A stretch of 64,000 nucleotides of DNA from Lepidodermella squamata. Its lineage: Eukaryota; Animalia; Gastrotricha. Positions 10,831 to 63,989 of the stretch are shown in pieces. Position 1 is the stretch's first letter. Every line of letters begins with the position of its first letter. The notes beneath the pieces were generated by a model. It made no database searches. It had not been told where the DNA came from and was given only the letters and a program-made list of their open reading frames with translations. The stretch is from NCBI GenBank assembly GCA_047495785.1, contig JBLDXI010000004.1:1302001-1366000 (forward strand), read 5' to 3'. The position numbers and the translations under genes are program-made.

Positions 10831-10971
10831 TAAATTTTTCACTAAAAATTGTGAACTTTTTTTTGCAAATTCCATTTAATTTTTTTGTCAAGTTTCGGGC
10901 GATCAAATGGTTGCGTATCACGTAGCTATGCTGGTGGCTCTGCTGATGCTAGTGTCAAGCGATGTTGCTTT

Positions 10972-11910
10972 CAGAGTTTTGGTCTGGTCTTTCTAAAGTA
11001 TACCAAACCTATACCAATACCAATACCAATACCGGTCCGAGACCGGTTTGGCCGTAATAAAGGTGATGGTATGGTCTACGGTATAGCTTAAGGCGGTCTG
11101 GTATGGTCTTCCGATGTCGGTATTTGCAAAAAAATCGAAAAGCGCTTCAGCAAGCGATGTAATCCACCTGGCACAACGTGGCGTCTTTGCAGTACACGCT
11201 ACTAGTCAGGTTAAAACGCACATATGTATATTCGCAACAACATGTATATTATTCCAAAGATAAAAATTATTCTGATCATACCGTGCTATACCAAATAATT
11301 GCGCGCGCGTTGAAACATCAACTATCTAACGCTGCGGAATTTTGAAAAACAAATTAGATATTCTGAATCAGCGCAAAAAGTTGGTCTAGAGTGCATGATT
11401 GCGCATGCTTATATTCCAAATTAGGAAAGATATAGAGGAATGAAAAATGCTACTTTTGTGAGCGCGGGCGCGCGTGCACGTCGAAATCAACGCTCACGCG
11501 CATGTGCGCGCGACATCCTTTCAGTACAAGGTGCGCAGTTGTGAGCGGCAAGGCCGCGCGCGGTCAGTCACACGCACACACACACGCGCGCGCCGCGCTC
11601 CGTTCATATTTGCCTCTCAATTTCTTACTCATTTTGACAGATAATTGTGCGCAAATTTGCAAACTAGCCTAACTTTTTGCGCTGATTCGAAATATCTAAT
11701 TTGTTTTTCAAAATTCCGCAGCGTTAAAAAGTTGATGTTTCAACGCGCGCGCAATTATTTGGTATAGGTTTTTGGTATTGGTATTGGTATTGGTATTGGT
11801 ATTTGCCTCTTCGAAACGTAACGATAGCGGTAGTTGGTATAGCACACATTTTTATCTGGTATGGTAGTGGTTTGGTCTTTACTTTTAAATTTGAAAAGAC
11901 CAAAACTCTG
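10972..11910. mobile_element. hAT-type non-autonomous element in exon 1 of copy 1
   Basis: TIR CAGAGTTTTGGTCT, 8-bp TSD GTTGCTTT (10964-10971 and 11911-11918), subterminal ATACCA repeats. Confidence 0.9.
11291..11762. mobile_element. MITE nested in the hAT element
   Basis: Long TIRs CCAAATAATTGCGCGCGCGTTGAAACATCAAC…, flanked by TATA on both sides. Confidence 0.85.
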
Positions 11911-14838
11911 GTTGCTTTAAGTGAAGCGAAGAACTCGGTTCGTTGTTTTTCGCAGTTCAGCAACCGATTTAAAAGCTGCGTACCAGCTTCCGCTGGCTGC
12001 AATCCACTCACCGAATATCAGGTTTTTCTCTCTGCGATTTCTTTGAACAGCCTTAGTTGATATGCTTATCTATCTATCGATAGCTGGGCTCCATCTTGCG
12101 AACAACCGGGAGCTGCAACACAGGGGTCTGTTCTAAAATCCTTCCTGCGAAAATTCATGTCTAATATTGGTCCTTTTCATCAATAGAATGCACGGATGTG
12201 CTACAAATACGAGGCTCTTACTCCGTTTTGCGTACCTGGCAACGTTGGCTGTAACAACCCAGGTGATATGAATGTGAGCATCGTTTCATTAACCAATAAT
12301 CAAACTTTACACTTTACAATCAAACCTAAAATTCCACTGTTATTGTTGTTATATATTTTTTAATTTGCCGCAGACATTCTGGTTTGACAATCAGAAGGCG
12401 ACGCTGAGCTTGGGATTCAACCTCAACGAATGCGAGAAAAAGAAAGCTGCATTCGAGGTGAGAAATTCAAGAGACTTGGCCATTTCGCATTTCGTACTGT
12501 TCTTCATTTTTGTATCATTTCAGACTTCAAAATTCAGGCGCTGCACCTCGAGCAACGTCACCAAGACTTGTTTTCCCGATCCGTATTCCTGCCCAAACAA
12601 CTGGGTAAGTCATTTTCGCCATCGTGGGCGTCGTATTTTTGAGTCTCGGTTCGCCTATAGATTTCTGGATCAACTTTGTATCCCGGTCTCGTGTCATGCA
12701 TCAATGGAACAGGTTTGTGAATTTGATTTATTTTATCGGAGTATGAGGATGTGAGAATATATCGCATATTCACTAGTATAATTAACAAATGAAAGCAACA
12801 AATTCTTTGTCACTCGGAGAAATTTTACCATAATGTAGACGAAACCGTTGTTTGAGGGTTAGAAAATCAGGTAATATTAAGCAATTTTGATATTTTTAGC
12901 GGGCATGATTCGCAGATTACCAATGAAGGAAGTGCCACAAAAAGAAGCCTTGCGCAATTTGAATTATTGGTTGCCATTGTGAAGTTCCATCGGTCTATAG
13001 AGTTTGCTAATAAAAGTCGGGTATATTTCGCAATCCAGTACCCCTAACGAGCTCGGTACCTGGCTTTGAAAAAAAATGAGACTTCTCAGATAGAATTTAA
13101 ATCACCAAAGTCATTTTCCAGTGGGAAAAGGATGAAGTCGCTATGTTTTCCTGTTTTCAGTCACGGTCCCTGTAAGCGAGAAGCCGCACATCCGCTGCTT
13201 CGACTTGAGACGCAATTTCGGCGTCACAATTTTTTCTCAGCACTCGAAAAAATCGGGCTTTTATTCGAGGCTTTTTTTATCTTGGAGATAATATTATTCA
13301 AATAAATTCGGTATTTCAAAAGCTGCGTCCTGGTAAGTCTCATGGAAAGGCGCTATGTTTTCGTGTTTTTCGATCACGGTCCCTGTGAGCGAGAAGCCGC
13401 ACGTCCGCTGTTTCGACTCGGCAACGGGCAAATTCAACAACTGCCTGCCACAAAGCACTGGCTGCTTGGCTAACAATGAAACTCAGCAATATTCGACTAA
13501 TGTGTTCATCAACTATAGAAGTTGCCTGCTCGGGGTTAGTTCATTTACTCGCGTTTTATGCCTAACTTTGTATATATGAACAGAACGCGGTTTCATGCAA
13601 AGGTTCGTCCAACCGAAGTTCATGCTACGCAGCCTGCCCTCGAGACCTAACGCAGGTGAAACTTGGCTATTTAAAACTCGCGGATCAAAGTTTCTACGGG
13701 TGATTCTAAAACAGGTTAAGCTCTTCTCGGACTTGCAATCCTTTCAGCTAAACCACGGCAAGTGCATCACTGAGATATCGCCCACGGTAAGTTCGAACTC
13801 ACTTTCTCGCAATCACGAATGTCGCCGGCTATAGTCGCAAGTTCAATAGAAATTACATTTTATGGCATTGAGCCTAGTTCAAGCATTGATGGTAGAAGAA
13901 TAAGGCGATCAGTTCAGCTTCAAGGTTTCCCGGCTTCATTCACACAGCCAGATGAAAGGAAAGCCGTATTCCTTGCTTATCATTGATGTTCTGATAGTTT
14001 TAAATTTTTCAATTCTAAAAACTGAGAGATCTCTAAAAAGAATGATAGTCTCGTGGGACATTTCAGTCAAAGGCGTTTTATTCACAAAATTACGGTATAT
14101 TTTTCAAGAATTATTTTGTTTTTGATTAATGGAAAATCAGCAAAACAACTACATTAATTTTGCGAGTTTAACTGGAGGGAGAGAGGGACGTGTGGTGAGG
14201 GAGTTATCACCTGGCTTTAAGACTTTAAAAATCGAGAGAATATTGAATGTTACTTACTGTGCCATGCAAATTTTAGCCGGCTGCGTATTTTCGCTGCGTC
14301 GACAACAGCAATGGAACAGCTTCTTGCACCACTTCGTCTACAGGCTGCAATGCGGCAACTCAGCTTCGAATTCCGGCAAATGTGGTCTATCCGGACGAGA
14401 ACACTTGCAAGAATGCGACCAAGAAGTACTCGGTGGTGGCTTATTCGGGTGCCAGAGCTGACAGCGCGGCAAAATGCGCCGCAGTCAATGCTACGCTGGC
14501 GACAATTAGGTCAGACGCTGAGCTGGCTGCTGCGAGAAAAGCGGCAACGGCGGCGGGTTCTGATTCTTATTGGATTGCCCTAACTCGGCAAAATGGCGTA
14601 TTTAAATGGGATGATGGATCAAGTTTCACTTTCGTCACATCGCAGTGGAATTCTGTTGCTGCCGGCTGTGTTTCTCTCAAGTACGCCCTCGCCCTTGTTG
14701 ATGAAGTCCCAGCCGATGGATATTACTATAACTCTATTGAGTGTGCATCTCATTCAGCCGCAATCTTATGCGAGTCGTTTTAGTTGTACACTTTTCGGTC
14801 TTTCTTCTGCGCTATGCCTTGTAACTTGTAACTTGTGT

Positions 14839-15443
14839 GTGTCGTAGACAATGGTGAAATATTGGCCAATAACACATTGAAGTCATCTAAATTGAAATAT
14901 CACCATAGCCAGCATAAACTATCGTGAAATCGCACCTGTTGCGCAAAGTTGTCAATTGTGCGGCACTTATACGGTCATGGACTGGATCATGGACGTCGAA
15001 CGTGAAACGTCACCGTCACTCTCATGCGCACAGATTAAGCTATCGCTAAATATCACCATGGATAGTAATTATCGGGAAAAATCATTTCTTCTTGAATTTA
15101 GCCATCGAGTAATTTGATAAAAGTAAAATAAAGTGACATTTCACGATAGACAGCTCCAGTCCATGATCATAATAGTGTCGAACAGGTGACACGAATAGAG
15201 CGAAGTAGGACCGTGGAACTGGTTGGTATAACGAAAATCGACATAAGCGCAGGGTCCCTTTGGTCTTTGGGTGAGCTCACCGTACGATAGGGATGATCCC
15301 TACCATCCCTGGCGGTACTTCGCTCTCTAACTTTGTGACGACTTTGTGCGACAGGTGATATTTCACGATAGCTTATAATGGCTATCGTGATATTTCAAAA
15401 TAAATTACTCCAATGGTGTTATACTCCACTATAGCCTACGACA
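14839..15443. mobile_element. MITE with TGTCG termini and ~120-bp imperfect TIRs
   Basis: TGTCGTAG…GAAATATCACCATAGCC…CTATCGTGAAAT is inverted at 15335-15443. The element is absent from the equivalent 3' flank of other copies. Confidence 0.6.
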
Positions 15444-15937
15444 TTTATGCCACTAATAATATTTGGGGAGATCTTCTCTTCTGATCCGTGAACAACTGCT
15501 TCACCGAGTATTTAGAATAAAGCGATACATTTCAAGACAAGAGGATTTGTTAATCGGTAACAATAATTCCCACATGCCAATAGGTAAATTTTGCCATGGA
15601 GAAACAAACGTTTTTTCTATGAAGCAGCGTCCGCACTGGTTCGAATTTCACAACATTCGCGAAACTAGTTAATACGCGGTTAAAAGCACAAATGTAATTT
15701 TCTAAATCTTTAAGCCCAACGCCTTTGATGCTGTTCTAGGGGCGTAACATCAAAAAAAGATATTTTCATCCCTGGCAGCTCGGGGGTCCACCTGGAAACG
15801 TACCTGGACACGTCGGCTGTAACAACCCGGGTGATATGAATGTGAGCCTCGTTTCACTAACCAATCATATACAATAAAACATCAAATTGCATTGCTATAT
15901 TGTTATTATATTTTTCATTTTTTTAATATGCCGCATA

Positions 15938-16033
15938 CCGTAGTTACCGAAATAGAAGCCTAGGCGGCAACCCTTTGTCAGCACTTTGATGTTCTTTGTA
16001 GTGCCGCCCAGGCTTGTATTTCGGTAACTACGG
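15938..16033. mobile_element. Short TA-flanked MITE
   Basis: TIR CCGTAGTTACCGAAATA…, TA on both sides. Confidence 0.8.
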
Positions 16034-16506
16034 TAATTTGCCACAGACTTTCTGGTTCGACAATCAGAATGCGACGTTGAGCTTGAAATACAACCTCAAC
16101 GAATGTGAGAAAAAGAAAGCGGCATTCGAGGTGAGAATTCAGGAAACCTGGTCTTTACGGAATATGCTTTACATTTATATCCTTCCAGACTTCGAAATTC
16201 AGGCGCTGTACGTCGAACAATGTCATCAATACTTGTGTTTGTGTTCCAGATCCGTATTCCTGCCCCAACAACTGGGTGTGTAATTTGCACCGTCACGGGT
16301 CCGTTTTTATTCTCGGCTTGGTTTCGCCTCCAGGTTACTGAAACTGTGTATCCGAATCTTGCGTCTTGCACCAATGGAACAGGTTTGTGGGTTTAGATCA
16401 AGATACTGTTTCAACAATTAAACAAAACGAAATTATTTCCGATCGGGAATTAGAGAGTCCCGAACAGTGCATTGATTTAATTTATTGACTTGATTTACCG
16501 CTTTAA

Positions 16507-16887
16507 CCCTTAGCCGCCGGCGCAATGACGTGTTAACTCGAGCATCTTTCAGAAAATCCCAGAAAATCAAGAAGAGGCTAAAATCAAATTCTGAGTCGGC
16601 ACAAAGTCTTACATTTAGCCTTAGATTGAAAGCCGAACCTCTTTACCTAGGTTGCCGTTGCTATGACGTGTTAACGCGTTTTCATGCCGTGTTAACAAGT
16701 CATTTAAAAATTGTCTCACTATTTTCGACCTGGTCAGAATGGCTTTGAAATTTTCGGGGAGTGCTTGTTTCTTGCTATTGATTTATCATAATTTACGACG
16801 TAACAATGGGTTCGATAGCCCAAATCCTCCGACCACGGTGAATTTTCTCCGGAATTAACGCGTGTACACGTCTTCGGCGGCTAAGGG
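16507..16887. mobile_element. piggyBac-type MITE
   Basis: TTAA|CCCTTAGCCGCCG … CGGCGGCTAAGGG|TTAA. The paralogous intron in copy 5 (~35641) shows the empty site. Confidence 0.9.
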
Positions 16888-16972
16888 TTAATAAGGGACC
16901 TCCTCGAATCGATCAAAGTCAATCATTGTCCCGTTGTTCGTGTTCTGTTCCAATCTTTTAATTTCCCAATTC

Positions 16973-17359
16973 AGTATCTCTAATAAGCTCGATAGCGGGG
17001 TAACAGCGCATTTTAGAAAAAATGCAAGCCTTCCCAAGACTCCAGATCCAATCAGTCGTTGTTCTGCGGAATTGAATTCAAATCGAAAGCTGTAGATTCG
17101 AAAATCCACGTTTTACGGTGGATCTTTGAGTAACCATTTGGACTAAACAGAAACTTTGAAGATTGCTAACCAGTAGACGAGCCAATGTCCAAATGGTTAA
17201 TCAAAAATCCACCGTAAAACGTGGATTTTCGAATCTACAGCTTTCGATTTGAATTCAATTCCGCAGAACGCAGCGACTGATTGGATCTGGAGTCTTGGGA
17301 AGGCTTGCATTTTTTCCAAAATGCGCTGTTACCCCGCTATCGAGCTTATTAGAGATACT
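16973..17359. mobile_element. Foldback element (~170-bp arms, short spacer)
   Basis: AGTATCTCTAATAAGCTCGATAGCGGGG…CCATTTGGAC and its reverse complement. A shorter related copy lies at ~36120-36270. Confidence 0.8.
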
Positions 17360-17848
17360 TCTAGCTTTCGATATCCTTCTAAGGACAGTCGCTTTGTCCA
17401 CATTTAAACAGTCCGACGTCATTTTTAAGCCTTGCATGATAATGATGGAGATTCATTTTTTCGTGTTTCTAAGTCACGGTCCCTGTAAGCGAGAAGCCGC
17501 ACATCCGCTGTATCGACTCGATAACTGGCAAATTCAACGGCTGCCCCGCACAAAGCACTGCTGCTTGGCTAACAATGAAATATTCGACTAATTTGTTCAT
17601 AATGGAAAATGCCTTGAAACTGCACTCAACCGAGACCAACACGGACTTGAACCCTTCAACACGCACCGAAAAAGAAACGGGGACGTGACACGTTCCATCG
17701 CACCACAAGGCGTGTCGCAATAGAAAATATCGAAAACAACAACAGCAACAACGCACCGTCATTCACCATTCATTGGATAAACTTTTTACACAATTTTACA
17801 CATATCGTGAATTTTCAGCTGATTTTTTTCCAAGGCTCATTCGATCAA

Positions 17849-20481
17849 ATGGTTTCGTATCACTGTGCTCTGCTGATAACCCTATTGCTGGCGTCATGTG
17901 GCACAGCATCGGGCAAAGAGTTGAACTGGGTTCGCTGCTTCTCGCAGCTCAGCAACCGATTCACCAACTGCGTACCAGCTGCCAATGGCTGTAATCCACT
18001 CAACGAATACCAGGTTTACACCTATTTACTTGCATGGGTGCAGTAACTTGATGATTGTTGAATTTTTCACCAACTAGTGGGGCGGCATTTTTCGAACAAC
18101 TGGCGTCTGCAACACTGGCGTTAGTTTTACTCTTCAGTTTGTTGTTTGTTAATTAATTCCCCTGTTTTTCCGATAGAATGCCCGAATGTGCTACAAATAC
18201 GCGGCTCTTACCCCGTTTTGCGTACCTGGTAACATTGGCTGTAACAACCCGGGTGATATGAATGTTAGCCTCGTTCTATTTTTTGAATGTCTCTAAATAA
18301 AAAAAAATTCTGCTCTTCTCACATCGTTGAATTAATACGACTTTTGTATTTCAGACTTTCTGGTTCAACGATCAGAATGCGACGTTGAGTTTAAAATACA
18401 ACCTCAACGAATGTGAGAAGCAACGAGCTGCTTTCGATGTAATAACTTCCAAACCTCTGTTGACAGTGCTCATGATTAATTTTTGTTCAACCATCGTAGA
18501 AATTGTCAAAATTCCGGCGCTGCACCTCGAATAACGTCATCAAAACGTGTGTTCCGGATCCGTTCACTTGCCCTGAAAATTGGGTTAGTTTTGTTGAATT
18601 TTCCTATTCAAAAATTACTCAATTGAATTACTCATTTATTCCTCTTCTAGATCACTGAATCGACATTTACTCAGATTTAACGTCGTGCATCAACACCACG
18701 CGTGAGTCAAATATTAAAATCGGTTATTTGAAAAGACTAAGATAACATTTCAATCTAAATATGGAATGAGGGACCTTAATTTGTCGACAAGTTAAATGGT
18801 CAGCGAATTGTATTTCCGTTAAATCAAATTTATCAATGATTGTAAGAAAATACCGAGATTTTCATTCCTGCATTACAAAATTTGATGAACTATTGGGACA
18901 ACTGTTAATTAACGCCGAAAAATTTCGCAGCAGGAAAATGAAATTAACACGAGTGGTGTTTTTCAATCGCAGAGTCTGTTCCGATCAGCGAGAAGCCGCA
19001 CATCCGCTGTTTTGATTCGACAACAAGCAAATTCACAAACTGCCGACCTCAAAGCACTGGCTGCTTGGCTAACGCTGAAACTCAGCAATATTCGACTGAT
19101 GTGTTCATCAACTATCAAAGCTGCCTGCTCGGAGTGAGTCTTTTCTAATTTACTCGCATTTGATGTCTATAATATTATTTTTCAACAGAACGCGGTTTCA
19201 TGCAAACATCCGCCTAAACGAAGTTCATGCTATGCAGCCTGCCCTCGAGACCTAACCCAGGTGAAACTTGGTTATTGAAAACTCGCGGATCAATTATTTT
19301 ATGTGTGTGATTCTCAAACAGGTTAAGCTCTTCTCGGACTCGCAATCTTTTCAACTGAACTACGACAAGTGCATCGATGAGATATCGCACAAGGTGAGTT
19401 CTCATTAACTTGTTTTAAATCAAGAATGCCGCCAGCTAGTTGAAAGTTCAATTTAAAGTACATAGGGCCTAGTTTAAGCATGCGTTTGATGGTAGAGCAA
19501 CAAGGCGATCAGTTTAGCTTCAAGATTTCCCGGCTTCATTCGGACAATCCGATGAAAGGAAAGCCGTATTCCATGCTTACCGTGGATGTTCAAATACCTG
19601 TTAAATTTTCAATTCCTAAAACTTAAAGATCTCAAAAAAGAATGGGATAGTCTCTTGGGACGTAATTTCAATGTTTTCGGGCCCTACCGTTTCAACTAAA
19701 CTGCGCTGCTTAACGCGATGGCGTTTTATTCACAAAAATGCGGCAATTTGAATAGAAATATTATTATTTTTTGATTAATTGAAATCAGCAGCAAAAACGT
19801 ATGATTCATTTTACGAGACTAACGGGAGGGAAAGAGGGACGTGGCGTGAGGGAGCACTCAATTATCATTTATTCTATTATTTCTATCATTTTAAACAAAA
19901 AATCGAGATAAAAAGTGTGACTCACTGTCCCATGTAAATTTTAGCCGGCTGCGTATTTCCGCTGCGTCGACAACAGCGATGGCGCTGTTCATTGCGTCAC
20001 CGAGTCGACAGGCTGCAATGCGGCAACTCAGCTTCGAATTCCAGCTAATGTGGTCTATCCGGACGAGAACACTTGCAACAATGCGACCAAGAAGTACACG
20101 GCGGTGGTTTCTTATGGACTCAGAGCTAATCTCATGCCCAAATGCGCCGAGATAAATGCTACATTTGCCACGATTAGGTCTGACGCTGAGCTAGCCGCCG
20201 CTAGGCTCGCGCTCCAGCAGGCTAGCTCTGCACTAGGTTCCACGGTTTATACGGCATTGGTCGCTCTCAGTCGGCAAAACGGCATACTCAAATGGGATGA
20301 CGGATCGAGCTTCACTTACGTCGAAACGCAATGGGCTATGGTTCCATCTGATGATGGGTGTCCACGCTTAGTTTACTATACTAAAGGTTCACATAACCTT
20401 CCATCAGACGGTTATTACTATTTGTTAGATGATTGTGATAATACCTTTTCATACGGTATCTTGTGCGAGTATTTTGAGTGA
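17849..20481 (+). pseudogene. Cys-module/C-type lectin gene copy 3 (one 1-nt frameshift in exon 6; possibly functional if the indel is an assembly error)
   Basis: All 10 exons have GT-AG sites. Exon 6 reads ACA TTT ACT CAG ATT TAA; adding one T restores ITESTFYSDLTSCINTT. Terminal exon 19945-20481 is intact. Confidence 0.75.
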
Positions 20482-21067
20482 AGCTATTGAGCCTTTTTCT
20501 GATAATTTCTCGCGAGATGTTTCGCGACGAAGTTAAGGTGAATAATTGTATGTGATAAAAAGGAGAGATAATTGATCTGACTAATAGATAATTCCGCCGT
20601 GCGTTTAGAAATAAAGTGTGTGTGAAGTAATAGTGAAACATGTATGCTCTTCTACGGGGCACTTTGATGACTCTGATTACGCTCAGTAATTTTGATGATT
20701 ATGGTATCGCTGTGGTACACTTTTCTTTTGAACAATTCCTTGTGAGATTGTCGTAAGAAGCCGAAGTAAAATGATAATATTTGGAGAGATTATATTCTTC
20801 TCACACGTCAACAATTGCTTCACCGAGCATTTAGAATCAAGTCGGTCAGCTATCAAGACGACAAGATGCGTTAACCGGTATAGCAATTGTTATATTAAGG
20901 GTGCTGAGAATTAAGGAATCTTAACGGTGCTAAGGGCAGAAACGAGATTCCGGCCCGCTGAAAATGCCCGAGGGTGGCGATTACATTGCGATTACATTGC
21001 TGATAACTGCAATGAAACATCGAAGAATTCGCGTTTGAGAGTGCGTTTGAGAGCGCGTTTGAGTTTG

Positions 21068-21309
21068 CAGTGTGCGACTTTCAGGGGGGGATGGGATCCC
21101 CCTCCAGCTCGACCGGGCCAGACAACAAAATGAGAATTTATCCCACTGTTTTGTTAATTTTGAAAGGTTCTGGGGCGTGTTTTAGTGGAAAATCTCAAAA
21201 ATGTTCTCGCTTCGCTCGGTTAGTAGCCCAAATGACTCGTCATTTTGGCAAATACAGCAAACAATTTTTTTCCATCACTGGGAGCTCGCGGATCGAAGAT
21301 CGCACCCTG
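21068..21309. mobile_element. hAT MITE family A (copy)
   Basis: CAGTGTGCGACTTTC…GATCGCACCCTG. Same family as 45410-45648, with partial copies at ~53850-54023, ~62100-62310 and ~31170-31208. Confidence 0.75.
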
Positions 21310-21323
21310 TTTGAGACTATTGG

Positions 21324-21769
21324 AACAGTGCAAAATTCCAGGAAACGATTCGCCGAATAAGCTGATCAACGAGTTTCGGAGGAAAATCTCTGTGCGAAGC
21401 GACTGCATTGGGATTATTTGGCTATGATCCTGACCAGCTTGAAGAACCGATTTGAATCGCGCCAGTTCACGGTAGACGCCAGTTTTTAAGTAAATCACTG
21501 CACGGCGCATGTCAAATATCCAGAACTGACTATTTTGATTGTTTATAAGCTCATCTCACACACACAGTTTAAGCGTTCAATTAAAATGGTTTTTGTTAAA
21601 ATGATTTCTTTGGTTCTAATTTTGCTTAGCTATAGTTTAATCCCTTAATGGAGTCGTCCAGTAATTCAGTGATTCGGATTTCAACAGAAATAAAAAAAAG
21701 ATCAACCTTAAACACGTGGACGGGCGGAAACCCATTTTCCATTGAAGCAAAAAATTACCAACCACGTGC
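21324..21769 (+). repeat. 446-bp direct repeat, left copy (flanks LINE)
   Basis: Appears identical to 23115-23560 (offset 1791). Confidence 0.95.
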
Positions 21770-23114
21770 ACTTATGCCGATGACGCTGCAAACTGGGCAT
21801 GGGGGCCCCATTATGAGCAATGTGTTTCGCGGCTTCAGTCTCGCTTACGTTCGACAGAAACCTGGTGTGCTAGATGGCGACTTGACCTCAACCCGACAAA
21901 GTGTGAGTGTATTATAATCGGTCATCATGGCGCCTCCTCCCCCTCCGTCCTATTGTCTATTGGTGGCGTGCGAATCCCGCAAGTGAAAGAGGTTAAGTAC
22001 CTCGGAATCACATTGACTTCGAAACTCTCGTGGGAGAGTCATCTTGATCGGCTATCAGCGAAAATCAAACCCCGAGCTGCATGCTTACGCGGCATCGCCG
22101 CACGAAAAGTTGTCCCTAGTGACCTCTGCGTTCGTTTTAGCAAAGTCCTCATCGAAAGTGTCCTTACCTACGGCTCACCAGCCTGGTATTGTCTACCCAA
22201 GTCGTCCGAGCTACGTCTGTTCGGCTTCCAGGCCCACGGCTTGAAAGCTGCATTGGATCTGCCTATCGAGTGCGACCCTTTCGGTGTTGTCGTCGAAGCT
22301 GGCGTGGAAGCAATCAGCGACGTATTTAAGCATCAACTGATGCGGTACGCCATCAGGTGCCTCAACGCAAATAACGGGATGAAGGATTATATATCCTACG
22401 TTGCCAGCTTCCAGCCTGACGCCTTCGGCCTCCGAATGCTGGAGAAGCACTGTCCAGCATGGCACTTGCGTGACTGCATTAGTGCCCCGGCTAAGCCCTG
22501 CCGCCTCATCACCGACATTTTCCCTAAAAACTAATGTGAGCCTGTGGTTTCCTGTATTTCCTTTAGGTGCCCTTGCGATCCTCGCCCTTCTGAGCCCCTC
22601 TCGAGCCAGCCCGATTAATACGTAAGCTTACCGTTTAATAAATTGATCTCTGCCTTGCCTTACAGAGCCCTGAGCCTGAGCCTGAGTCGTCATGAGCCTG
22701 ACCTTGAGCCTTGAGCCTTTCGGAACCTGAGCCTTGTCTGATGAGCTGGAATAGCCCTGCCTGTAAGCCCTTAATTATTGCCGTTAACCACCTTCGATAA
22801 TTTTCAGCCCTACTCAATTTGCGCAACGAGCCCGAACCCTCGATCGACTTTTCTACCTTTCTACAAAAACGCACAAAAAGCCAACAAAAATCGACAAAAA
22901 AAAAAATCGACAAAAAAATACAAAAAAAAAAAAAAAAAAAAAAAATAATAACATAAAACTCGAAACTATGAACTGCCTATGATAATGTTCAATTTATAAA
23001 TGCTACGAGCCCTAGATAGCATGGGGGCAATATATTTTCATGCTCTAATGCCACTCATATGTGCCTATAGCGCCGGCCGGCGGAGGGCCTATATAAATAA
23101 AACTACGACATGCT
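21770..23114 (+). mobile_element. 5'-truncated non-LTR retrotransposon (RT C-terminal half + 3' UTR)
   Basis: The open frame from 21770 reads TYADDAA…WRLDLNPTKC…KYLGITLTSKLSWESHL…LTYGSPAW to a stop at 22534. An A-rich tract lies at ~22896-22945. Confidence 0.9.
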
Positions 23115-23560
23115 AACAGTGCAAAATTCCAGGAAACGATTCGCCGAATAAGCTGATCAACGAGTTTCGGAGGAAAATCTCTGTGCGAAGCGACTGCATT
23201 GGGATTATTTGGCTATGATCCTGACCAGCTTGAAGAACCGATTTGAATCGCGCCAGTTCACGGTAGACGCCAGTTTTTAAGTAAATCACTGCACGGCGCA
23301 TGTCAAATATCCAGAACTGACTATTTTGATTGTTTATAAGCTCATCTCACACACACAGTTTAAGCGTTCAATTAAAATGGTTTTTGTTAAAATGATTTCT
23401 TTGGTTCTAATTTTGCTTAGCTATAGTTTAATCCCTTAATGGAGTCGTCCAGTAATTCAGTGATTCGGATTTCAACAGAAATAAAAAAAAGATCAACCTT
23501 AAACACGTGGACGGGCGGAAACCCATTTTCCATTGAAGCAAAAAATTACCAACCACGTGC
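23115..23560 (+). repeat. 446-bp direct repeat, right copy
   Basis: Appears identical to 21324-21769. Confidence 0.95.
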
Positions 23561-24675
23561 GAACAAGAAGTTGATTGATTTTCATCAAAGTCACGCCGCA
23601 TCGGCCAAGATCGACAGGATACTACAACCTTTTAAATAACATAAAATTCGCGAATGTTTGTGTGGAGATCACAGATTCTCGTGAATGAGGACGCAAACAA
23701 GTTACTGAGACACGAGGTTCGGCACCTGAATTTCTAACATCGCCCGGTTTCCTGTGATCTTCATGCAAGAGCAGTGAACTTCAACCGACTTAATCGTTAC
23801 GAATTACGATAAATGTAAATGTAATGCATTAACCTACGGAAAAAGAGGGTCGCGCTCCCTTACACGACCCCCAATTTTAGAAGCCCTGCATTATAGATAT
23901 GGATTAATAGTAATGTCTACATGGAATTTAAGTGGTCCTTGCGGTTAAAATTCTCATGGTAACTTACATTTAATCCTTAGATATTGTCAGGTTTTTACAA
24001 CGTCCCAGGTGATAAAATTTATGTAAAGCATGCGGCTAAAACTTAATTTAATTTATTCAAATTGTTAATAAAAATATTCTTGTATTTTATTTTATTGTCA
24101 GTAATTATTGTTTCAGCTTAACAATTATTTTCCTTCACACTTCTCCATGTTTCGTTCAAAGTTCAGATTTGTTACTGCTCAACGGGCGTTTTCGATGAGT
24201 GCTCGCGCGTTACAATTTTCTAACTATGGTTTTCTGCTTGGTTCGGGTCATGTTAATCTACTGAGTATTTCGCACTTGTTTCACGCTTACCGATACGTTG
24301 AAAGGGAGAAGTGCTATCGAATACTTGGCTCATTTTAGTTGTAGATCAATTTTGACTTTCTGCGCTGGCTTGTTATCTGCGGCTTGCAATACGGGTTGGC
24401 TGGTTTGTCTCCTCCTAAATTTAGTATGCTGTCCTTGAAGCTTCAACTTGTCATGTATATGCACGAACAGTTTAGGCTTTTGCTAGTCTATAGCACTAGC
24501 GACTATGTTTTTCAAGGTCTTGGCATCTCTTACAGCTAGCTCGAGTTGATTTTTAGCTTTCTTCCATTACTTACTTCCTTAGATGTTTTGATTACCATGA
24601 ATCTGGCTGAATTTGTTAGCGACATGCTTTCCTACCTTTTCAATCTGCTAACCTCTGATAATTTCCTTTTTCTAG

Positions 24676-28181: not shown

Positions 28182-28797
28182 TGGGACATTTTCTGTCTTT
28201 CTTCGGTGCGATGCCTTGTGAGATTGTCGTAAGAAGCCGAAGTAGAACTAAAATGATAATAATTGGAGAGATCATTCTTCTGATGTCTGATACGTGAACA
28301 ACTGCTTCACCGAGCATTTGAAATAAAACCATGCATTTCAAGACGACAAGATTCGTTAACTGGTAACAATAATTCCCACATGACCAAAGTTAAATTTTGC
28401 CAAGGAGACCCCATAGATCACTTCGTTCCCCATGGGTGTCTATGCTACACTCTAAAGATGTATTCACTTTATTTTTGCCCGATAAACCAATACGCGAGAA
28501 TAAAGCCTTACATCGACGCCTAAAGAGGTACACTGTTACACTATGTCTGGAAGTCGAAAGAAGACATTGACTCTTCGAAAGGGCCATATTTCAAAAGGTC
28601 AGTTATTAAATCAATCGAATTTCTAATGCTTTATTTTCTTCCTGCTTTTAGGCTAGGCCAGGACTTGGCTTTGATCTAAATTGCTGCGGACCCGCTCTTT
28701 TACGAAATTGCTTTGAAAGCACACCCTGAATCCCCCAATTCTTCTGAAGTCAATACGCAATAATTCAATTTGGTTGGAAAATGATATCGATTTTGCA

Positions 28798-49200: not shown

Positions 49201-52144
49201 ACGCCGTCATGCTTGAACGGCGGCTTCCCCGTGCCAGCCGCCAACGCCCCCGGCAGCCCAACCTGCAGCCGATGCGTCTGCCCCAGCGGCCTATCAGGCG
49301 CCGATTGTTCAACGATCGGCGCCGCCCCATCGCCGTGCAACCAAAACCTCGTCGATATCCCGCCTTGCAAACGCGTCTCCTTCGCCTTGCCGACGTACTC
49401 GAGCGGCGACGCGTGCACCCGGCGCTACCGAACCGCCGGCAATGGCTTCATCCTCGGCTTCGACGGGCGCCCAGGCCTGAGGTGCGGCGCCCTGAATAAC
49501 GACCTGGCTTGCGAGGACTACATCGAGGTGAGAGCAGTGGCGGCGGATGGCAAGCTCGGGCCGGCGAGGCGGTTTTGCGCGTGCGGCGTCACGGCTGGCC
49601 GCGTTGCGACCATCGACACGAATGAGGTCATCGTCACGTTCCAGAGCCGAGCGGCGACCCCGGGAACGCGCGGCTTCAAGCTCAACATCTACGCCACTTG
49701 CCAGGTAAAAATTTTGAAACAAAAATCAGAGAATTGATGCTGATTTATTTTTTAATTAATTTTTCTATTTGGATGAAAATTGAAAAAATTCTGAGAAAAT
49801 TTGAATTAATCTCACCCTCAACTTTGAATTTTTAAATTTTTAAAATTTACAAAATTGGAATTTTGATTTCTGAAAAAATTAATGAACTAAAAATTTCGTT
49901 TGGTTTGAAGCTCCGAAAATTCTGAACTTCGAATCGAACCTTGGGGGATTAAACATTCCCGACAGTTTGCCTAGTAGTAATTTCCAAAAAATTAATTATA
50001 AAATATTAGGGATTTTACTCAATATTTTAAAAATTGGTACTGATTTTAGAATCGGAATTTTCGAACTCTAAATTTGAATGAGCCTGTGTAGAAATGCCTG
50101 GAAAATTATTTTCTGAAATTTTGAAATATAGCTTTGGACCTAACCTCTGGACCTAACCTTTAATAAAATAGTTCATGGGGTGAATTATCAATCGCTTGTC
50201 TCAACGATGCGATTGTTCCATTGTCTGAAAATCCTAAAAATGTTCATAATATTTTCAAATTTTCGAATTCGGAAAAATGAAATTTTGAATTTGCAGGAAA
50301 ACAAGAAAAATTAACTGTCTTTTATAAAATTTAAATTTTTTTTTAATTTTCAATTTCCGAGAAATGGATGTTTTCCCGTGAATTCCTTATATAATTATAT
50401 TTTTTTATGGGAATTATTCTTCTAAATATGAATTTCGGCTAAAGAATATTTCACGCTCGTGTAGGGTGTTTCGGCTACGCACTACTCGAACCGGTGCCGC
50501 ATCACGCCATCCGGCTACGACTACATCGGCATTAAAAGTGTCGCTGAGAACAACAAGACGTGCATGCCGTGGCCGCCGGGCATCATCGACGACGAGCTCA
50601 ACTACCCGATGGGCGATCGCCAGGCGTCGAAACACTACTGCCGCAACCCGTACCGCCAGCAGTCGGAGCCCTTCTGCTACACGGCGGCGTCTTACATCGA
50701 AACAGCCCAGTGCAATCCGATCCCGCATTGCCGTAAGCTAAACTCCTCATTGATATCGCCCAAAAGAAATGGGAATATCTTTTAGCGGAACCAAATTTGC
50801 TGTATCGGAACCAAATATGCTGTAGCGGAACCAAATTGGCTTTTTGCGGAACCAAACTCTAAATATGCCAAGAGTCATTTTTTGAATATTTCTAAGAATT
50901 ACCTTTTGGCTGAGAAACAAACATTTTCAAAGATTTTTCAATTGAAAGTGAAATTTTCAGAAAAATTGAGAACATGTCAAAAAAACAAGGAAATTGAAAT
51001 AAAATTGAAAAATCAACACATTTCAGAAATCAAAAATTTAAGTGCAATTTATTTTACACTTTTTCAAAATTTCAAAATGTAAAAAGTTAAAAAGTTAAAA
51101 ATTAAAAAAATGAAAACAAAATTGCGAAAATTCCCATCTAAATCGCTGGTGATGATAACTGTGTCACAAGGCAACCTGATTGTTAAATCAGGCAGTCCCC
51201 ATTTGTAAAACATGTTTATCTCCCTTTACAATTTTATTTCAATTTAGAACAGAAGTTTTTGTATTTGAAAATGCTGAAATTTTCTCAAAGTGAAATTTTG
51301 ATCAGTTCCCAATCCTAAATTTATGAAATATCGGGAATCAAGCGATTTCCAGCTCCTGGACAACCGTTGCTAAGGTGTTTGCGTCAATAATTTATTGTTG
51401 ATAACCCGCAAGAAATACGAATGATTTTTCAGACTCGAGCGTTCGATGCAACCGGCGCAACGGCGACTTCAAAGCCTGTCGTGAATACAAGCCGAACGAG
51501 CCGAATTTCGGCTGCCACCCGGACGAATCCACGGTATGAAAAAAGGCACCATGAATGCGTTTAAATTTCCAAATCTTATCGTTAAACGCAGTTGACGCCA
51601 CTTCGCGTATTCCCGGACCCAGATTCGTGCAATATTAACGTAATTTCAGGCCTCTTTTGATATAGCACTGATGTCAACAATTTGGTTTAGGGTGTGAAAA
51701 TGTGCTACGACTTTGACAGCTCGACGATCAAGTGCGTTGAAACGTTCCGCCAATGCCCTGCCCCTACCAGAAAGGTTCGCGCCCAAATTCCAGCCTTCAG
51801 TTGAATCTTCTCATTTTTGTGAAACTGAAATCAGATCGGCCACATCAGCTTGTACAAGCGATTCGAGAAGAACATGCGTTTCTGTAAGATGGGCAAGGTA
51901 AGATTCCTGATCTTTTGGCACATTGGTGATTCGACCCGATGTGTAGGTTCCGCACTTCCGCTGTGTCACCTATGCTGATCCGAATTCTTTCAAAGCCTGC
52001 CGACCTGTTAGCGTTGGATGCCGCAAAAACGTCGAGGTAAGCAGCAACTGTGACCATTTGCACAAATATACTCCCGCAATTATTTTCTAGTATTCGGTTG
52101 GCGAGTACGAAGATCTAACCAGTTGCATTCCAGAGTGGCTATAA
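46296..52144 (+). CDS. Secreted astacin-like pseudoprotease: signal/pro, dead M12A domain, EGF, CUB-like, kringle, three 4-Cys modules (15 exons)
   Basis: In-frame splicing from MIRVAVLICAVF… to …SCIPEWL*. Astacin context W..PIFY, EHTRIDRD, PFDF.S, LS..D. EGF CLNGGF…CSRCVCPSGLSGADC. CUB-like C.DYIEV…RFC…GFKL. Kringle YIGIKS…CMPW…HYCRNP…PFCYT. Confidence 0.8.
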
Positions 52145-54349: not shown

Positions 54350-57300
54350 ATGACCGGTTCTTATTTTGTTCTTCTGGCACTTACGCTGGCGTCGATCGAC
54401 GTGGCTTGGGGCGCGCAGCCGTTGAACTGGGTTCGCTGCTTCTCGCAGTTCAGCAACCGATTCACCAACTGCGTACCAGCCGCCGATGGCTGTAATCCTC
54501 TCACCGATTATCAGGTTTTTCTTCTCAATTTTAGTTTTCTTCGAAGAGCTGAGTAATTGAAATATTTCTCTATCGACAGCTGGGCTCAAGCTTACGAACA
54601 ACCGGCAGTTGCAACACCGGGGTCTGTTAAGATTACCAGTAAATCTATTTTCAATTTTGGTCTGTTTTGGTCATCTATATAGAATGCCAGGATGTGCTAC
54701 AAATACGTGGCTCTTACCCCGTTTTGCGTACCTGGTAACGTTGGTTGCAACAACCCTGGTGATATGAATGTAAGCCCCATCACCCAATTATTTGGAATTA
54801 AGCATCAAACTAAAATTATTACTGTTGTTGTGATATATTGTTTCGAATATTCGCCTTAGATGTTCTGGTTCGACAATCAGAATGCGACGCTGAGCCTGAA
54901 ATACAATCTCAACGAATGCGAGAAAAAGAAAGCTGCATTCGAGGTGATGCATTCAGGAAACTTTGCCCCTCTGCTGATTATGCGTTACACCTGTATCGTT
55001 ACAGACTTCGAAATTCAGGCGCTGCACATCGAACAACGTCACCATGACTTGTGTCCCAGACCCGTACTCCTGCCCCAACAACTGGGTGGGCGATTTTAAA
55101 AGGTTGATGTGTTCCTGTTTGACGCTGATTCTTGTTTTCTAGGCCACTGAATCGACTTTGTATTTAAATCTTGCGGCATGTACCAATGGAGCAGGTTCGT
55201 AAAGACCAGACTCGATTTTCGAAAACTGGAAACAGAATAATTCATCCAGTACAATTGCTATTATTTTCCGTTTGTCATCTCAGTCACAGTTCCAGTCAGC
55301 GAAAAGCCGCACATTCGGTGCTTCGATTCTGCCACCAAAAGGTTCAACGACTGCCGACCGCAAAGCTCGGGATGTTTCGCTAGCAATGAAACTCAGCAAT
55401 TCTCGACCAAAGTTTACATCAACCGTGCAGCTTGCATGCTAGGAGTAATTATTTAGTCATTTTCGTTACAGCAATAAATGCGCTTGTTTTGACAGAATGC
55501 TGTTTCATGCAAGGATTCATCCAATCGAACGTCTTGCTACGCGATTTGTCCTCAAGATCAATCTCAGGTAACCTCTCAATGAAAATCACATTTTTTCTGG
55601 TATCTACTGTTTTTCATCAACAGGTTAAGCTGTTCTCGGACTTGGGCAACTTCCAGTTGAATCACAACAAATGTATCACGGACATAACCCCGGTGGTGAG
55701 TTCTCATCGAAGCTTTCAGCCCTATGGTGTGTGCAGCTATCGTTTCACTTCCTTATAACTTATTCTTGATTGCCCGATTTGACTGCGATTACTCTTGTCC
55801 AGAAGTGGAAATAACAGGGGACCTTCAGGAAGCGCCCACCCTCTAAACGAACTCGGGGTTCCAGATCGGAGGAAAGTATATTTCTCCATGGCTAGCCAAT
55901 AGAGAGTTCCCCTATTGATTCGTCAATTGAAATGCGTAAACTGGGCTAATTAGAGGGACACAGGCTGGGTTATAAGCCTATCCTAGATAATTAGCTATTT
56001 TCATTTTCCCTAATTCCAATTCTCGGAATGTTTCAATTGCTCGAAGCTATGTCAACGTCGATGTGAATAAGGCTGAAATCTGAAATTTTGGAAGTATTTC
56101 CCCCATTACTAAGAATAACATTTTTCTTAGGAACAACTATAATCCGATCGTAGACTTTTATTCTTCGCGCGGCAAAGCACAATTGACCGAAAATAAGTGA
56201 TGCGGGGTTTGGCGCATTTTCCGTCTTTTCCAGCCATATTCCCAGCTGATGGCTGAAGGTTGCTTTGAAAGGGAAGATTCTGGGATTTCTGGATGTTTTA
56301 AGTCGGTTTTTCTTGAGGATTTTCAAACTTCAGATTCCTAGGAGGCTCCCATCCACCTCAAGAGACGGCAGACCCAGAAGTGACGGCGAAAAGGCTTATC
56401 GCTCCATAGGTTGACGTGGAAACACTGGCTTCATTCCATTCACATTTTGTTGAGCATATCGCAAGATTCCTCACCTCAGATCAGTGCTTTGAATTTGATT
56501 TGATTTGATTTGATTCAGACCCTGTTTTCACTTATTTAGATTTGAAATGATTGATTTACGTGGGGAAGCATTTTGATTTGATTGATTTTGATTTAACTTT
56601 GGAAATGCAATAAAAAAACTTGACATGTACTGTGAAAATGAAATTTGTCTTCATTTTTGCAAACATTTGCTCTAGAGAGGGATGGTAGTTCCTAATTTGT
56701 GCCATTTTATCAATTGCCTGAATTTTCATAGCCCCCAACTTGGTGAAAACCCTGATTTTTCCCGATTTATTGTGATTCATCGCTGTCGATGATTTGATTT
56801 GATTGATTTAGTCCCGTAGAAGTGGGACAATGATTGATTTTGATTGATTTGAGGAGTTCCATGATTTAAGCTGTAACTCATATGAAATCAAATTCAAAGA
56901 GCTCAGCCTCAGATTCAAGATCTGCACAAATTCTACCTTAACCTTAACTTTGAAGCCGATTTTCTCAGCAACCCTGATAGCTATCGACCTCTGTTTGATA
57001 TCGTTCGACTCCTCGTTCATCGATCTTGAAACGGCATCAAAATTTCACGACGATGTCTAAAATATCGCCAAACCCCGCTTTTCACTTATTCCCGGTCAAT
57101 TTATCTATATAACATAACCACAACATAAGTTGTATAACATACCGTATTTCTCGAAAATATACACCGGGGTATATTTGTGATTGAACCAACACATTTTTAG
57201 GGTTGTAATCGGGGTGGGGGATATTTTCGAGGTGCGGTATATTTATGATCCATCAACAATTTTCAGAAATGTGGTAAATACTGCTAACAATAATTTCGTT

Positions 57301-58244
57301 TTACTGGACCAAAGCGTGAAAAAGAAGGATTACTTAAGCAGTTCTGGAGGTTTTATCAGTTAGTTGTAGTTCTATACGATCGGAACATACGATATCAGCC
57401 ATGAAATCAGTAACATAGAAGACATTTTTCGAAAAGAATTGAACGTGAAATTCAAAATGGACCTCCCCAACTTCGCCCTTCGTGCCTCCATTGAGTTATC
57501 ACTGGCAATCTTATGCCCAGCCCAAGCTAAGCAACAGGCTGATGGGGTGCGTATTTCGTTTTTTTAGTAAAATGATACGGCGCTTTGGTTTTTTTAATAA
57601 CATGGGGTAGAATTTCGAGGTGCGGTATATTTATGATCAAACGGTAAGTTTTATAGGGTTGTATTCGGGGTGGGGAATATTTTCGAGGTGCGGTATATTT
57701 TCGAGAAATACGGTAGGTTGATAATTGATAAGAAATTTCTTGATAGACCACTTACCATCGATGTCTGCAAACTGCCGACAGTTCAGTATCCTGCCGACTG
57801 AGCTCGAGCGGCTGTGATGCCAACACGGAGAGACGATTTCCAGCAAATGTTACGTTCAGCGGCGAATCGCAGTGTCAAAACGCTAAAAGGACTCTGTTTG
57901 TGTATAGTAGCGCCGGCATTAATTTCAATCATTCAGCTGCAGCCGCAAAGTGCTTGGAACTGGGCGGCGCCTTGGCAACTGTTAAAATGGCTACAGACCT
58001 GTCCCGCATGATCAGCATGTTACCTAACGACCCCAGTGTCGTTGCCTGGGTGGGTCTTGCGCCAGAGTCCGGCGTCCTTAAATGGTCGGACGGTTCGGCT
58101 GTCACATACCAATCAAATCTGTTTTATATGCCGTTGAATAATGATAAATGTGGCGTGATTTATATCGGCATTCGTTTGATGATTTTCTATGCTTGCAACA
58201 CTATTAATGTCCCTTACGCAATATGCGAAACCTATGTTGAATGA
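54350..58244 (+). CDS. Secreted Cys-module/C-type lectin protein copy 6 (intact, divergent lectin)
   Basis: Signal peptide MTGSYFVLLALTLASIDVAWG, 9 module exons in frame, and terminal exon 57747-58244 TTYHRCLQ…KCLELGGALATVK…AWVGL…WSDGS…CETYVE*. Confidence 0.8.
57142..57713. mobile_element. Tc2/pogo-type MITE
   Basis: TA|CCGTATTTCTCGAAAATATA … TATATTTTCGAGAAATACGG|TA with repeated TTTCGAGGTGCGGTATAT. Confidence 0.85.
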
Positions 58245-60451: not shown

Positions 60452-61816
60452 TTATATTAAGCTATCCACGCATGCATCATGATTGGCTTGATAGTTCTGG
60501 TACGTCGAGTACAGCGTCTCCTGTGAATTTTCAACAAAGATTTTCGAAAGCTATGGCGACTTGGTACTCATCTGTATTACCTGAGTTGATTCGCCAATGC
60601 ACGATCCTTGACAAAATTCCACGTCAGATTGGTCTTTACACTTCACAGCTTTCTGTAACGAAATTACGTCAGCAATTCAATTTTACGAAAGTGAAAACAA
60701 AACTCACCCCAGTGAGGCACAAGTCGCGGTTTCCGTAAATGTAGACCCAATGGTTTCGAGTCTCGCCAGCCTGGCAGCCGGAGCTTTGAGGCCGGCAGTC
60801 GGCAAATTTCAAAGTCCCAGAATTGAAGCAACGAACGTGCGGCTTCTCGCTGTCCGGAAGTGAGACTGCAAAATTCGGGAAAAATAGTAGAAAAAATTCA
60901 TCAAAATTTGAAAGCAACCCACTCTGTCCGTTGGTGCACGATGCAAGATTATCGTAAACAGTTGTCTCAGTGGTCTGAAAATAAATCAGAAAATAAAGAG
61001 AGACATGCGATAATTATGGGCCAAACCCAGCTGTTCGGGCATGTATACGGGGTTGGCACGCAGCTTTTAAGGGTGCCGGCCGAAGTGCATTGCCTGAATG
61101 GTAAATTCTGGAAGTAAAAGCAGAACAATCTGTCATAATGTCTCCACGGAGCCTGGATGAAACGCCCACCGCAAATGATCCCTTTTTCCTCTCGCATAGG
61201 TTGAGGTTGAAAACTAGGCTCAGCGTTGCAGGTCGGTTGAATGTGAAAAGCTGAAAAAAATCAGAAATTACTTAAGCAAGAAATAAAAAATAAATTAAAA
61301 TTTTAGGTATTTTAGATTTTAGATTTCATAACTCATCAAATATCGAAAAGCCTGAATTCGAAAAATTTAAAATTTTGAGTTTGAATTTAACTCGGGTTGG
61401 AAATAGGCGCTGCGTACCGTTATTTCGTTGGCGGCGCATTGATCGAGCCCTGAAACACATCGCGGGCTGAGCACGTCATACTTGTAGCAAATTTTGGCAG
61501 TCTGAAATTCAAAAATTCAGTTCACCATTTTGTATCAAATTAACAAGTAGCTTACCCCACGGTAGCAGGAACCCTTAGCTGGGAAAACTGGACCGCTCTG
61601 AAAATTGGATAAATTGAGGCAAAATTATTTATAATTACGAAAATCTACCTGGTATTCGCTCAATTGATCGCAGGTCTCAGAAGCTCTGATGCACCTTGAG
61701 AATCGGCCGTTGATCTGGGAGAAGCAGCGATGCCAGTTTTTTTCCTTCTTACTCGATGCCAGGTCGATGCGAGTAAGCATCAGCGCGAACAGCATAGTCC
61801 ACATAACGCCAGCCAT
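60452..61816 (-). CDS. Secreted lectin-less Cys-module protein copy 7 (9 exons, five modules)
   Basis: MAGVMWTMLFALML…NWHRCFSQINGRFSRC; exons 2-8 are homologous to the family. Exon 9 ETLYSTYQNYQANHDACVDSLI ends in TAA (60452-60454) where other copies have a splice donor. Confidence 0.8.
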
Positions 61817-62504
61817 TTCCAGTGAAATTGAACAGCAATATAGAAAATGCGTGTAAAATAAATCAAGTTTTTTGTTCGAAAAAATTTCGAATGAATGAAA
61901 ATATAGAATTTTTTCAGCGATTTAAACAGCGGTGACGTGTCTGATTCTTTGTACGGCACGCGACCATTTTGCTTCTAGAATCAAAACATTTGAAAAAAAT
62001 AATAGGTTAAAGGAGGTAAAATTTCTAATTATTTTTCACTACATCGATGTTATCATAACTAACAATCGGAATTTTCAGGCATTTTCGCACTGAAATAATC
62101 AGGTTGCGATCTTGAGTCCTGGAGCTGTCAGGGATGGAGCAATTTTAGTTGCTGTATTTCCCAAACTGACCAGTGGTTTTAACCAGAAAACGAGCGAAGC
62201 GAGGAAATTTTGAAGATTTTCGATGAAACACGCTCCAAAACCTGTCATAATTAACGAAACAGCGGGCTAATTTATCATTTTCTTGCCCGGTCTGGCCGAG
62301 CTAGGGGCTAAGGATTCCTCATTTCCATATTAACAGAGCTGTTAAGGCGCACCCATCCTTATTTGACACCTTTCGATGATTGGCTGATACCCAAATACAA
62401 GCCTTTCACACCTCTTTGTCGCCACATTGATGTTCCTTGTAAAGCTGCCTGGGTTTGTATTTGGGAATTCACGGTAGTTAAGTTACCACAGCCGCCTGAA
62501 AATG

Positions 62505-62935
62505 CTTTCCCAGCACGTCGGCCCAAGGGCTTATTTGGCCCGAGCACGGGGGTCAACAACAGGAACCAGCGCTATTGTTCAGCGCCAGCCGGGCTCGGGC
62601 CGCCGGGTTCGGGCTGAGACTTGATAAAGTTATCGGATATGGCGTTGGTTGTAGGATGACCCAAGCACGGTGGCCCGATTCCAGATGCCCGAGCTCGGCT
62701 GTCCGAGTTCGGCGCTGAACAATAGCGCTGGTTCCTGTTGTTGACCCCCGTGCTCGGGCCAAGCCCTTGGCCGGCCCGTGTGCGGTGAAGCGTGATTCTA
62801 TCGAATTTGTTAAATCTCCAGTAAACGTCGCATACTGGCACGTTACAGACTGGCCTGAGCGGGAAGTGCTGTTACCCGGTGGCATATGGGCCGAAATCGG
62901 GCTCGGGGCTCGGGCCCCAACAGTTGAGCCAGCCT
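62505..62935. mobile_element. GC-rich MITE-like element with GGCCC/GGGCC repeats
   Basis: 50-bp inverted pair at 62537-62587 / 62711-62761. Boundaries are approximate. Confidence 0.55.
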
Positions 62936-62949
62936 TTTCAGAAAGAGCC

Positions 62950-63005
62950 GTTTCTCACTCTGTTTATTTCCCGAAATATTTCGGGAAATAAACAGAGTGA
63001 GAAAC
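62950..63005. repeat. Perfect 56-bp spacerless palindrome
   Basis: GTTTCTCACTCTGTTTATTTCCCGAAAT|ATTTCGGGAAATAAACAGAGTGAGAAAC. Confidence 0.95.
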
Positions 63006-63307
63006 TCAAACGCCGATGTTCGGTAGTTTTCGGCATTTAACTCGGTTTGAGATCAACATTTCTCCGGATTTTTACTCGGAATCTCATCAAGTTGAACACT
63101 TCGATGGCTATTCTCATTTTCTGGCCAGGAGATGATAGCTTCGCCTGCGAAATTTAAGAGTTTCTAAGCCCTTTGTTTGCGTTTCTGTATGCTACTAGTG
63201 TTGGCGGTGCGGAAGCATACACCAGCAACTGACTTCTTTATTCATGAGTTCAAAATAAGAGTCATTTCATCATCGTCTTTCCTAATCTGAACCAGTATGT
63301 TTCAGCA

Positions 63308-63989
63308 TCACGGCAAACAAGATCCGCGTGACGAATGGCTGCCCGATGTCAACTGCAATTGAAACAAAAAACAGAATTTGAAATTTGAAAATTGTTGGCG
63401 ATCGAAATAGCACGACCTCATTGGCGGCGCATCCTGCTGATATTGGCCGGCAAATTTTAAACTTGTTCGTCGTTTTGTCCATGCAGCGAACGTGCGGCTG
63501 TAAAATTATAGTGAAACGTCACAGTTTCAATTAAAAATGGTGATATCAAATTTTCAAGAAATTTTCAGAAAAATGTGAATTTTCAAAAAATACCAAAAAT
63601 GTGAATTTTCAAAAAATTTCGAAAAAATGTGAATTATCAAACAATTTCTAAAAGAATTGAAATTTTCAAATAATCTCCAAAAATATATAAATTTTCAAAA
63701 TATTTAAAAAAGATCCAAAAAATTGAACTTCCAAAAAATTACCAAAAAATATTTGATTTTTCAAATAATTTCATAAAATATTAGAATTTTAAAATATTTC
63801 CAAAAATATTTAAATTTTCAAAATATCCCAAATAAAATGTTAAATTATTATTGTCTCGATATTGAGAAAATTGATTGATTCATTTTATATAAGTTGAAAA
63901 AAACGTTACTGGCGTTTTACCTGAGCCTCGCGGTTGCGGCACTCGTTGTGATTTTTGCGGAAGCTGTTCGAATTGCGAAAAACGTCACT
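63308..63989 (-). CDS. 3' end of a further Cys-module gene (copy 8; continues beyond the window)
   Basis: Exons SDVFRNSNSFRKNHNECRNREAQ | PHVRCMDKTTNKFKICRPISAGCAANE | LTSGSHSSRGSCLP* with phase-0 GT-AG introns. Confidence 0.75.
63545..63850. repeat. Degenerate ~23-bp AT-rich intronic minisatellite
   Basis: Repeats of AAAAATGTGAATTTTCAAAAAATT-like units. Confidence 0.7.

Follow-up and report, generated by a model that had tools for sequence, protein, structure and literature searches.

A four-cysteine extracellular module shared by lectin-like, astacin-like and module-only genes of the gastrotrich Lepidodermella squamata

The window analysed here is a stretch of 64,000 nucleotides from the gastrotrich Lepidodermella squamata (assembly GCA_047495785.1, contig JBLDXI010000004.1, positions 1,302,001 to 1,366,000 of the forward strand). 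It holds a cluster of genes for secreted proteins, which share a unit of about 45 residues with four cysteines. This module is a real, unnamed extracellular domain that has not been described previously. It occurs in genes with a C-type lectin-like domain, in a gene composed of modules only, and at the end of an astacin-like gene.

Genes at the locus

Five gene models were assembled by hand, with splicing inferred from the sequence (Table 1). All introns of the five spliced models have GT-AG ends (49/49), and most are 49-67 nt long. C, D, E and the astacin-like gene are intact, with an open reading frame throughout; A, B and G are broken. None of the proteins of the gene models contains a transmembrane stretch. 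In-frame read-through from the astacin-like gene into gene D was considered and dropped, as no phase-matched donor and acceptor were seen by eye.

Gene A is probably a pseudogene, because its first exon is split by an insert and exon 7 (13374) has no preceding AG. The insert, about 950 nt long (10974-11925), interrupts the signal-peptide exon and looks like a non-autonomous DNA element; it has inverted-repeat-like ends and ATACCA/TTGGTA runs. Upstream of the full exon 7, whose acceptor is lost, lies a short copy of its start with an intact acceptor (13160-13205). The 5' remnant downstream of gene A breaks off in exon 7, where fragment G resumes; therefore one lectin-type gene seems to have been split inside this exon by 8.7 kb (17601-26303), which appears to be a nested duplication or an assembly effect. 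This interval holds the entire gene B, a piece of reverse transcriptase resembling a long interspersed nuclear element (LINE), and other DNA.

Table 1. Genes, gene fragments and selected modules of the cluster, in window coordinates (pLDDT, predicted local distance difference test; values after Pfam names are E-values).
Feature	Coordinates	Strand	Description
Gene A	10907-14783	+	Signal peptide, six modules, C-type lectin-like domain; Lectin_C 6e-10
5' remnant of lectin-type gene	15791-17601	+	Modules 2-3, start of 4; ends where G resumes
Gene B	17849-20481	+	Signal peptide, six modules, lectin-like domain; exon 6 (18651-18701) shifted out of frame by one base
Fragment G	26303-28181	+	End of module 4, modules 5-6, lectin-like domain; exon 9 interrupted by a stop codon near 26524
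Gene C	34259-37788	+	10 exons, 441 aa; signal peptide, modules 1-6, non-canonical C-type lectin-like domain; Lectin_C 1e-10
Gene C module 4	36402-36539	+	Single exon; AlphaFold pLDDT 91.9
Gene C module 6	37282-37419	+	Single exon; AlphaFold pLDDT 92.3
Astacin-like gene	46296-52144	+	15 exons, 692 aa; signal peptide, astacin-like domain without zinc ligands, EGF, CUB, kringle, three modules; Kringle 2e-10
Astacin tail triplet	51433-52144	+	Exons 51433-51533, 51592-51639, 51691-51774, 51835-51897, 51947-52036, 52091-52144; phase-1 intron ahead
Gene D	54350-58244	+	10 exons, 437 aa; signal peptide, six modules, more distant lectin-like domain
Gene E	60452-61816	-	9 exons, 268 aa; nothing but signal peptide and five modules; AATAAA 81 nt past stop
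Gene F, 3' end only	63308-63989	-	Last exon of one module and terminal module; remainder outside window

Sequence and homology of the modules

A first-pass annotation of the window had described a unit of the form RC-x-C-x-C-x-C strung along the spliced genes, and the peptides it quoted were all found at the expected places. We extracted 35 complete modules, 22 of which have an arginine directly before the first cysteine (C1). C1-C2 spacing is 8-11 residues and C3-C4 spacing 15-26; between C2 and C3 there are 6 residues in 28/35 modules, 3 in six and 11 in one. Kept at all positions are the four cysteines, a glycine before C3, a proline at C2+2 and an asparagine or aspartate helix cap at C4-4, which look structural. 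Aromatic residues and charges show no pattern that all positions have in common. The proposed division of each module into an exon with three cysteines and an exon with one was found at positions 1, 2, 3 and 5 and in the astacin tail, but the modules at positions 4 and 6 occupy a single exon each.

A hidden Markov model (HMM) of the module was trained on the lectin genes only, with 300 shuffles that left the cysteines in place as the null. It gave 30.8 bits for astacin module 3 and 29.1 bits for the terminal module of F (0/300 shuffles for each), and 19-41 bits for modules 1-4 of E. Astacin modules 1 (8.7 bits, 1/300) and 2 (9.3 bits, 4/300) were weak passes. The astacin tail does score with the model of the lectin genes, and the refutation that the first-pass annotation had envisaged from a failure here did not come about. 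Within the lectin genes, positions 1, 3, 4 and 6 recognize each other, whereas positions 2 (weak, 33/500 shuffles) and 5 (marginal, 2.6 bits when left out, 50/500 shuffles) are outliers. The three secreted classes originally proposed are present as lectin genes, the astacin-like gene and module-only E. E alone is shown to be module-only, because the 5' part of F lies beyond the window.

Pfam contained no family matching any of 18 module exons at E-values up to 10, complete modules 4 and 6 included. The families without a match comprise EGF, ShKT, TIL, WAP, Kunitz and CBM14, to which the cysteine spacing had already seemed foreign, as well as clip, FN2, Kazal and the worm DUF modules. FN2 and clip identities, suggested by the cysteine spacing, were dropped, as there was no Pfam match and no such fold among the matches. 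We found no relative among PDB sequences (chance matches only, e.g. PTPN22), among 1.84 billion representative sequences (three matches, all to unrelated repeat proteins) or in metagenome contigs. There was none in the ESM Atlas either, where module features reached 0.75 and shapes a template modelling (TM) score of 0.54 or less, and Foldseek searches with module models gave nothing at E 0.001. A word-indexed database also had no match, but this is a weak blank, as such a search sees only 0.55-1.75x the length of the query and overlooked even the exons for lectin and CUB. The searches for the module did not return the source organism's own proteins either. The module is likely lineage-restricted, and the picture of an exon-shuffled unit shared by three architectures agrees with both the HMM homology and the empty searches.

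Predicted structure

AlphaFold gave the same predicted fold for modules 4 and 6 of gene C (pLDDT 91.9 and 92.3), which are 24% identical to each other: a β-hairpin, two short strands and a helix at the C-terminus, with two disulfides presumably closing the domain. The nearest shapes are MbtH-like proteins, with 40-41 of 46 residues overlaid at an identity of 5-18%. A bacterial MbtH-like protein, acquired by gene transfer and domesticated, could be imagined as the source of the module. We find this scarcely credible, as hhalign returned a probability of 0.4% for the module against MbtH, within the column-shuffle scores (narrow YbdZ-centred profile), and the MbtH sequence signature with its conserved tryptophans was not found in the module in this comparison. 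Further, the scores of BRK, L9-type, vault and small phage domains against the module model are near that of MbtH; the shape is therefore common. MbtH-like proteins and related small α+β domains may resemble the module in predicted topology, but they are bacterial and cytoplasmic, lack the four-cysteine pattern and have no sequence link to it.

Kunitz/BPTI domains also share features with the module, namely the hairpin, a short strand, the C-terminal helix with the final cysteine and the extracellular location. That the module is a truncated Kunitz derivative, still binding or inhibiting proteases, is very unlikely in our view. It has four cysteines, against the six of Kunitz/BPTI with their P1 loop and C14-C38 bond, and the structural overlap begins at residue 18-20.

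Module order and intron phases

Astacin module 2 scores highest with position 2 (16.8 bits; other positions 5.9 or less), and module orders that keep the middle module central mostly score best. In a tree of the modules, positions 2 and 5 cluster with astacin 2, albeit with weak support (50/91), and astacin 1, astacin 3 and F group with position 4. Introns of the module region had been taken to be of phase 0, which does not hold for those preceding module 4 and the astacin tail. Among the introns of the module regions of E and the lectin genes, the one before module 4 is the sole intron of phase 1; the astacin tail is likewise preceded by a phase-1 intron, and position 3 ends in phase 1. Cassettes flanked by phase 1 are the usual form of shuffled extracellular domains. 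Sequence scores and phases together argue, with moderate confidence, for an outer-middle-outer triplet rather than a single module as the shuffled unit.

The last module of F (63308-63497, minus strand) is nearest to astacin module 3 (tree support 97/92). Because of this proximity, F may be another astacin-type gene rather than a module-only one.

Lectin-like heads, the astacin-like gene and gene E

In the lectin proteins, the modules lie between the signal peptide and the lectin domain. The Lectin_C profile matches A, C, D and G above and B below its cut-off (E 0.019). The EPN, QPD and WND motifs are absent from C and D, and from the alignment of five lectin-like domains; the head is probably calcium-independent. 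Module positions 1-5 are 65-93% identical among A-D, with a ratio of nonsynonymous to synonymous differences (pN/pS) of 0.22-0.31 in the module exons. In contrast, identity in the lectin loop region of A, B, C and G is 37%, with a pN/pS of 0.8 (alignment uncertain), whereas the adjoining module is at 88%. The alignments show heads that diverge fast on conserved modules, in agreement with the hypervariable lectins of the first-pass annotation, a pattern that falls short of proof for positive selection.

The astacin-like domain contains no HExxH: the first two histidines and the glutamate of HEXXHXXGXXH are replaced, the Met-turn SIMHY reads SASLF, and there is no cysteine. Pfam Astacin is a weak match (E 0.098, one exon only, positions 130-182), and the EGF-CUB exon matches nematode astacin-EGF-CUB clusters in the ESM Atlas (0.93/0.90), whose nematode origin is probably an effect of sampling. 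These two matches, together with positional motifs recognized by eye, suggest kinship with astacins. Pfam Kringle matches with 41.2 bits against a cut-off of 34.3. Judged by its residues, the astacin-like domain is a catalytically dead protease, as originally suspected.

Gene E, 49% identical to C, aligns position by position with lectin modules 1-5; neither a module-6 exon nor a lectin exon was found downstream of it. It is like a lectin gene minus its last exon.

A proposed conserved arm for variable heads

Our preferred reading, to which we give an even chance, is that two module triplets form a conserved arm presenting variable lectin heads and that the three classes are architectures of one mosaic family. 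Triplets would be cassettes that pass from gene to gene. Two of them per lectin gene, each of which we infer to be packed as a unit, would hold out the fast-diverging head, with which the secreted protein would most likely bind microbial or substrate surfaces. The role of the arm would be to extend and stabilize the protein, and perhaps to tether it weakly to the animal's own surface coat. The dead astacin-EGF-CUB-kringle protein, which has no head, and the module-only protein, which is arm only, would be other architectures of the same mosaic family. Several observations weigh against this reading. Some out-of-register module orders score higher against modules 4-6, the module tree has long branches, and support for the triplets is moderate. 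The astacin copy terminates in modules that have nothing to carry. Finally, E is old and constrained (pN/pS 0.47, pS near saturation), and modules therefore do something without a head.

The maintenance of module-only E under selection and the terminal position of the astacin tail would also fit the docking or polymerising module of the first-pass annotation, in which triplets bind in trans and lectins, module-only adaptors and the pseudoprotease form one recognition or adhesive complex, comparable to mannan-binding lectin with its CUB-EGF partners. The genes are indeed clustered, but this is explained by tandem duplication. The nearest shapes, MbtH-like proteins, are protein-binding adaptors, but a shared small fold says nothing about function, and there is no consistent charge complementarity between the classes. 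We consider docking improbable; if true, it would be a new route to a diversified recognition or adhesive coat. Its most far-reaching form, less probable still, would make a phylum-restricted, disulfide-locked, MbtH-shaped domain a self-recognising docking unit, by which a combinatorial complex at the surface would be put together from variable lectins, adaptors made of modules only and dead astacin-kringle scaffolds. Such a complex would be an independent counterpart of the lectin pathway that works without proteolysis, or else a new glue.

The existence of gene E could also mean that each module is a weak binder of a ligand (glycan, matrix or microbial protein) and that strings of modules are multivalent adhesins, with a further specificity supplied by the head or the dead protease. 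Avidity is a frequent outcome of cysteine-rich repeats in tandem (PMC6262176), and each module of C and E has 3-7 position-specific aromatic residues. However, no binding motif is common across positions, diversification is concentrated in the head and not in the modules, and there is no match to chitin- or glycan-binding Pfam families, all of which leaves this explanation doubtful. Docking and ligand binding by modules both stay candidates because module-only genes are maintained.

If the triplets do form an arm for variable heads, this would be a fresh case of familiar domain shuffling. The locus contributes an extracellular domain not described before, for which a fold is predicted with confidence and triplet cassettes are likely; secreted proteins of this phylum are apparently almost unstudied. 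It also provides a probable pseudo-astacin in Gastrotricha, where a 2023 review found no astacin (PMC9848320).

Other elements in the window

Two copies of a 446-nt direct repeat (21324-21769 and 23115-23560, 100% identical) surround a reverse transcriptase fragment on the minus strand (21746-22531; RVT_1 8e-6); the repeat is a recent duplication or an amplification artefact. Also inside the 8.7-kb insert, the AT-rich region 24900-25600 contains a spliced-looking reading frame (~160 aa in 25117-25596) without a Pfam match. A piggyBac-like transposase with apparent introns lies at 28650-30075 (DDE_Tnp_1_7 3e-10). The interval between gene C and the astacin gene contains a stop-free frame of 506 codons with a SWIM finger (40874-42391, minus strand), which is probably a Mutator-like transposon. 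Near the start of the window are a DDE_1 transposase piece (401-1111) and an element (3183-7153) with 215-nt inverted ends (3183-3397 and 6940-7153, 98% identical) and several long frames inside without a Pfam match. Between genes F and E, the region 62500-62950 is GC-rich with internal near-repeats.

Comparison with known systems

The astacin-like gene has the domain order of astacin-EGF-CUB proteases (nematode NAS type, blastula protease 10-like) and their DRD motif past the zinc site (PMC9848320). It differs from them in having lost the zinc motif, the Met-turn and the cysteines of the catalytic domain, and in the added kringle and module triplet. Gene E fits the description of secreted cysteine-rich repeat proteins (SCREPs), which have a signal peptide and tandem cysteine-rich domains (PMC6262176). 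SCREPs are, however, a descriptive class and not a family, and the domain of E has no assigned type among them.

Selectins and collectins carry a lectin head on a repeated stalk, and mannan-binding lectin has MASP/MAp19 partners. The lectin genes resemble these systems in the lectin head on a conserved arm and in the CUB-EGF protein nearby. They differ from them in lacking collagen, a coiled neck, Sushi repeats, a membrane anchor and calcium motifs.

CUB, vWA and PAN/CW are partner domains of clec proteins. Mosaic invertebrate C-type lectin-like families such as the clec genes of C. elegans, with 283 members (PMC8051790), are, as here, secreted, expanded and diverging, with birth and death of genes in tandem, and some of their members bind bacteria. 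In the gastrotrich genes, the partner of the lectin-like domain is not one of these three but a triplet of the unnamed four-cysteine module.
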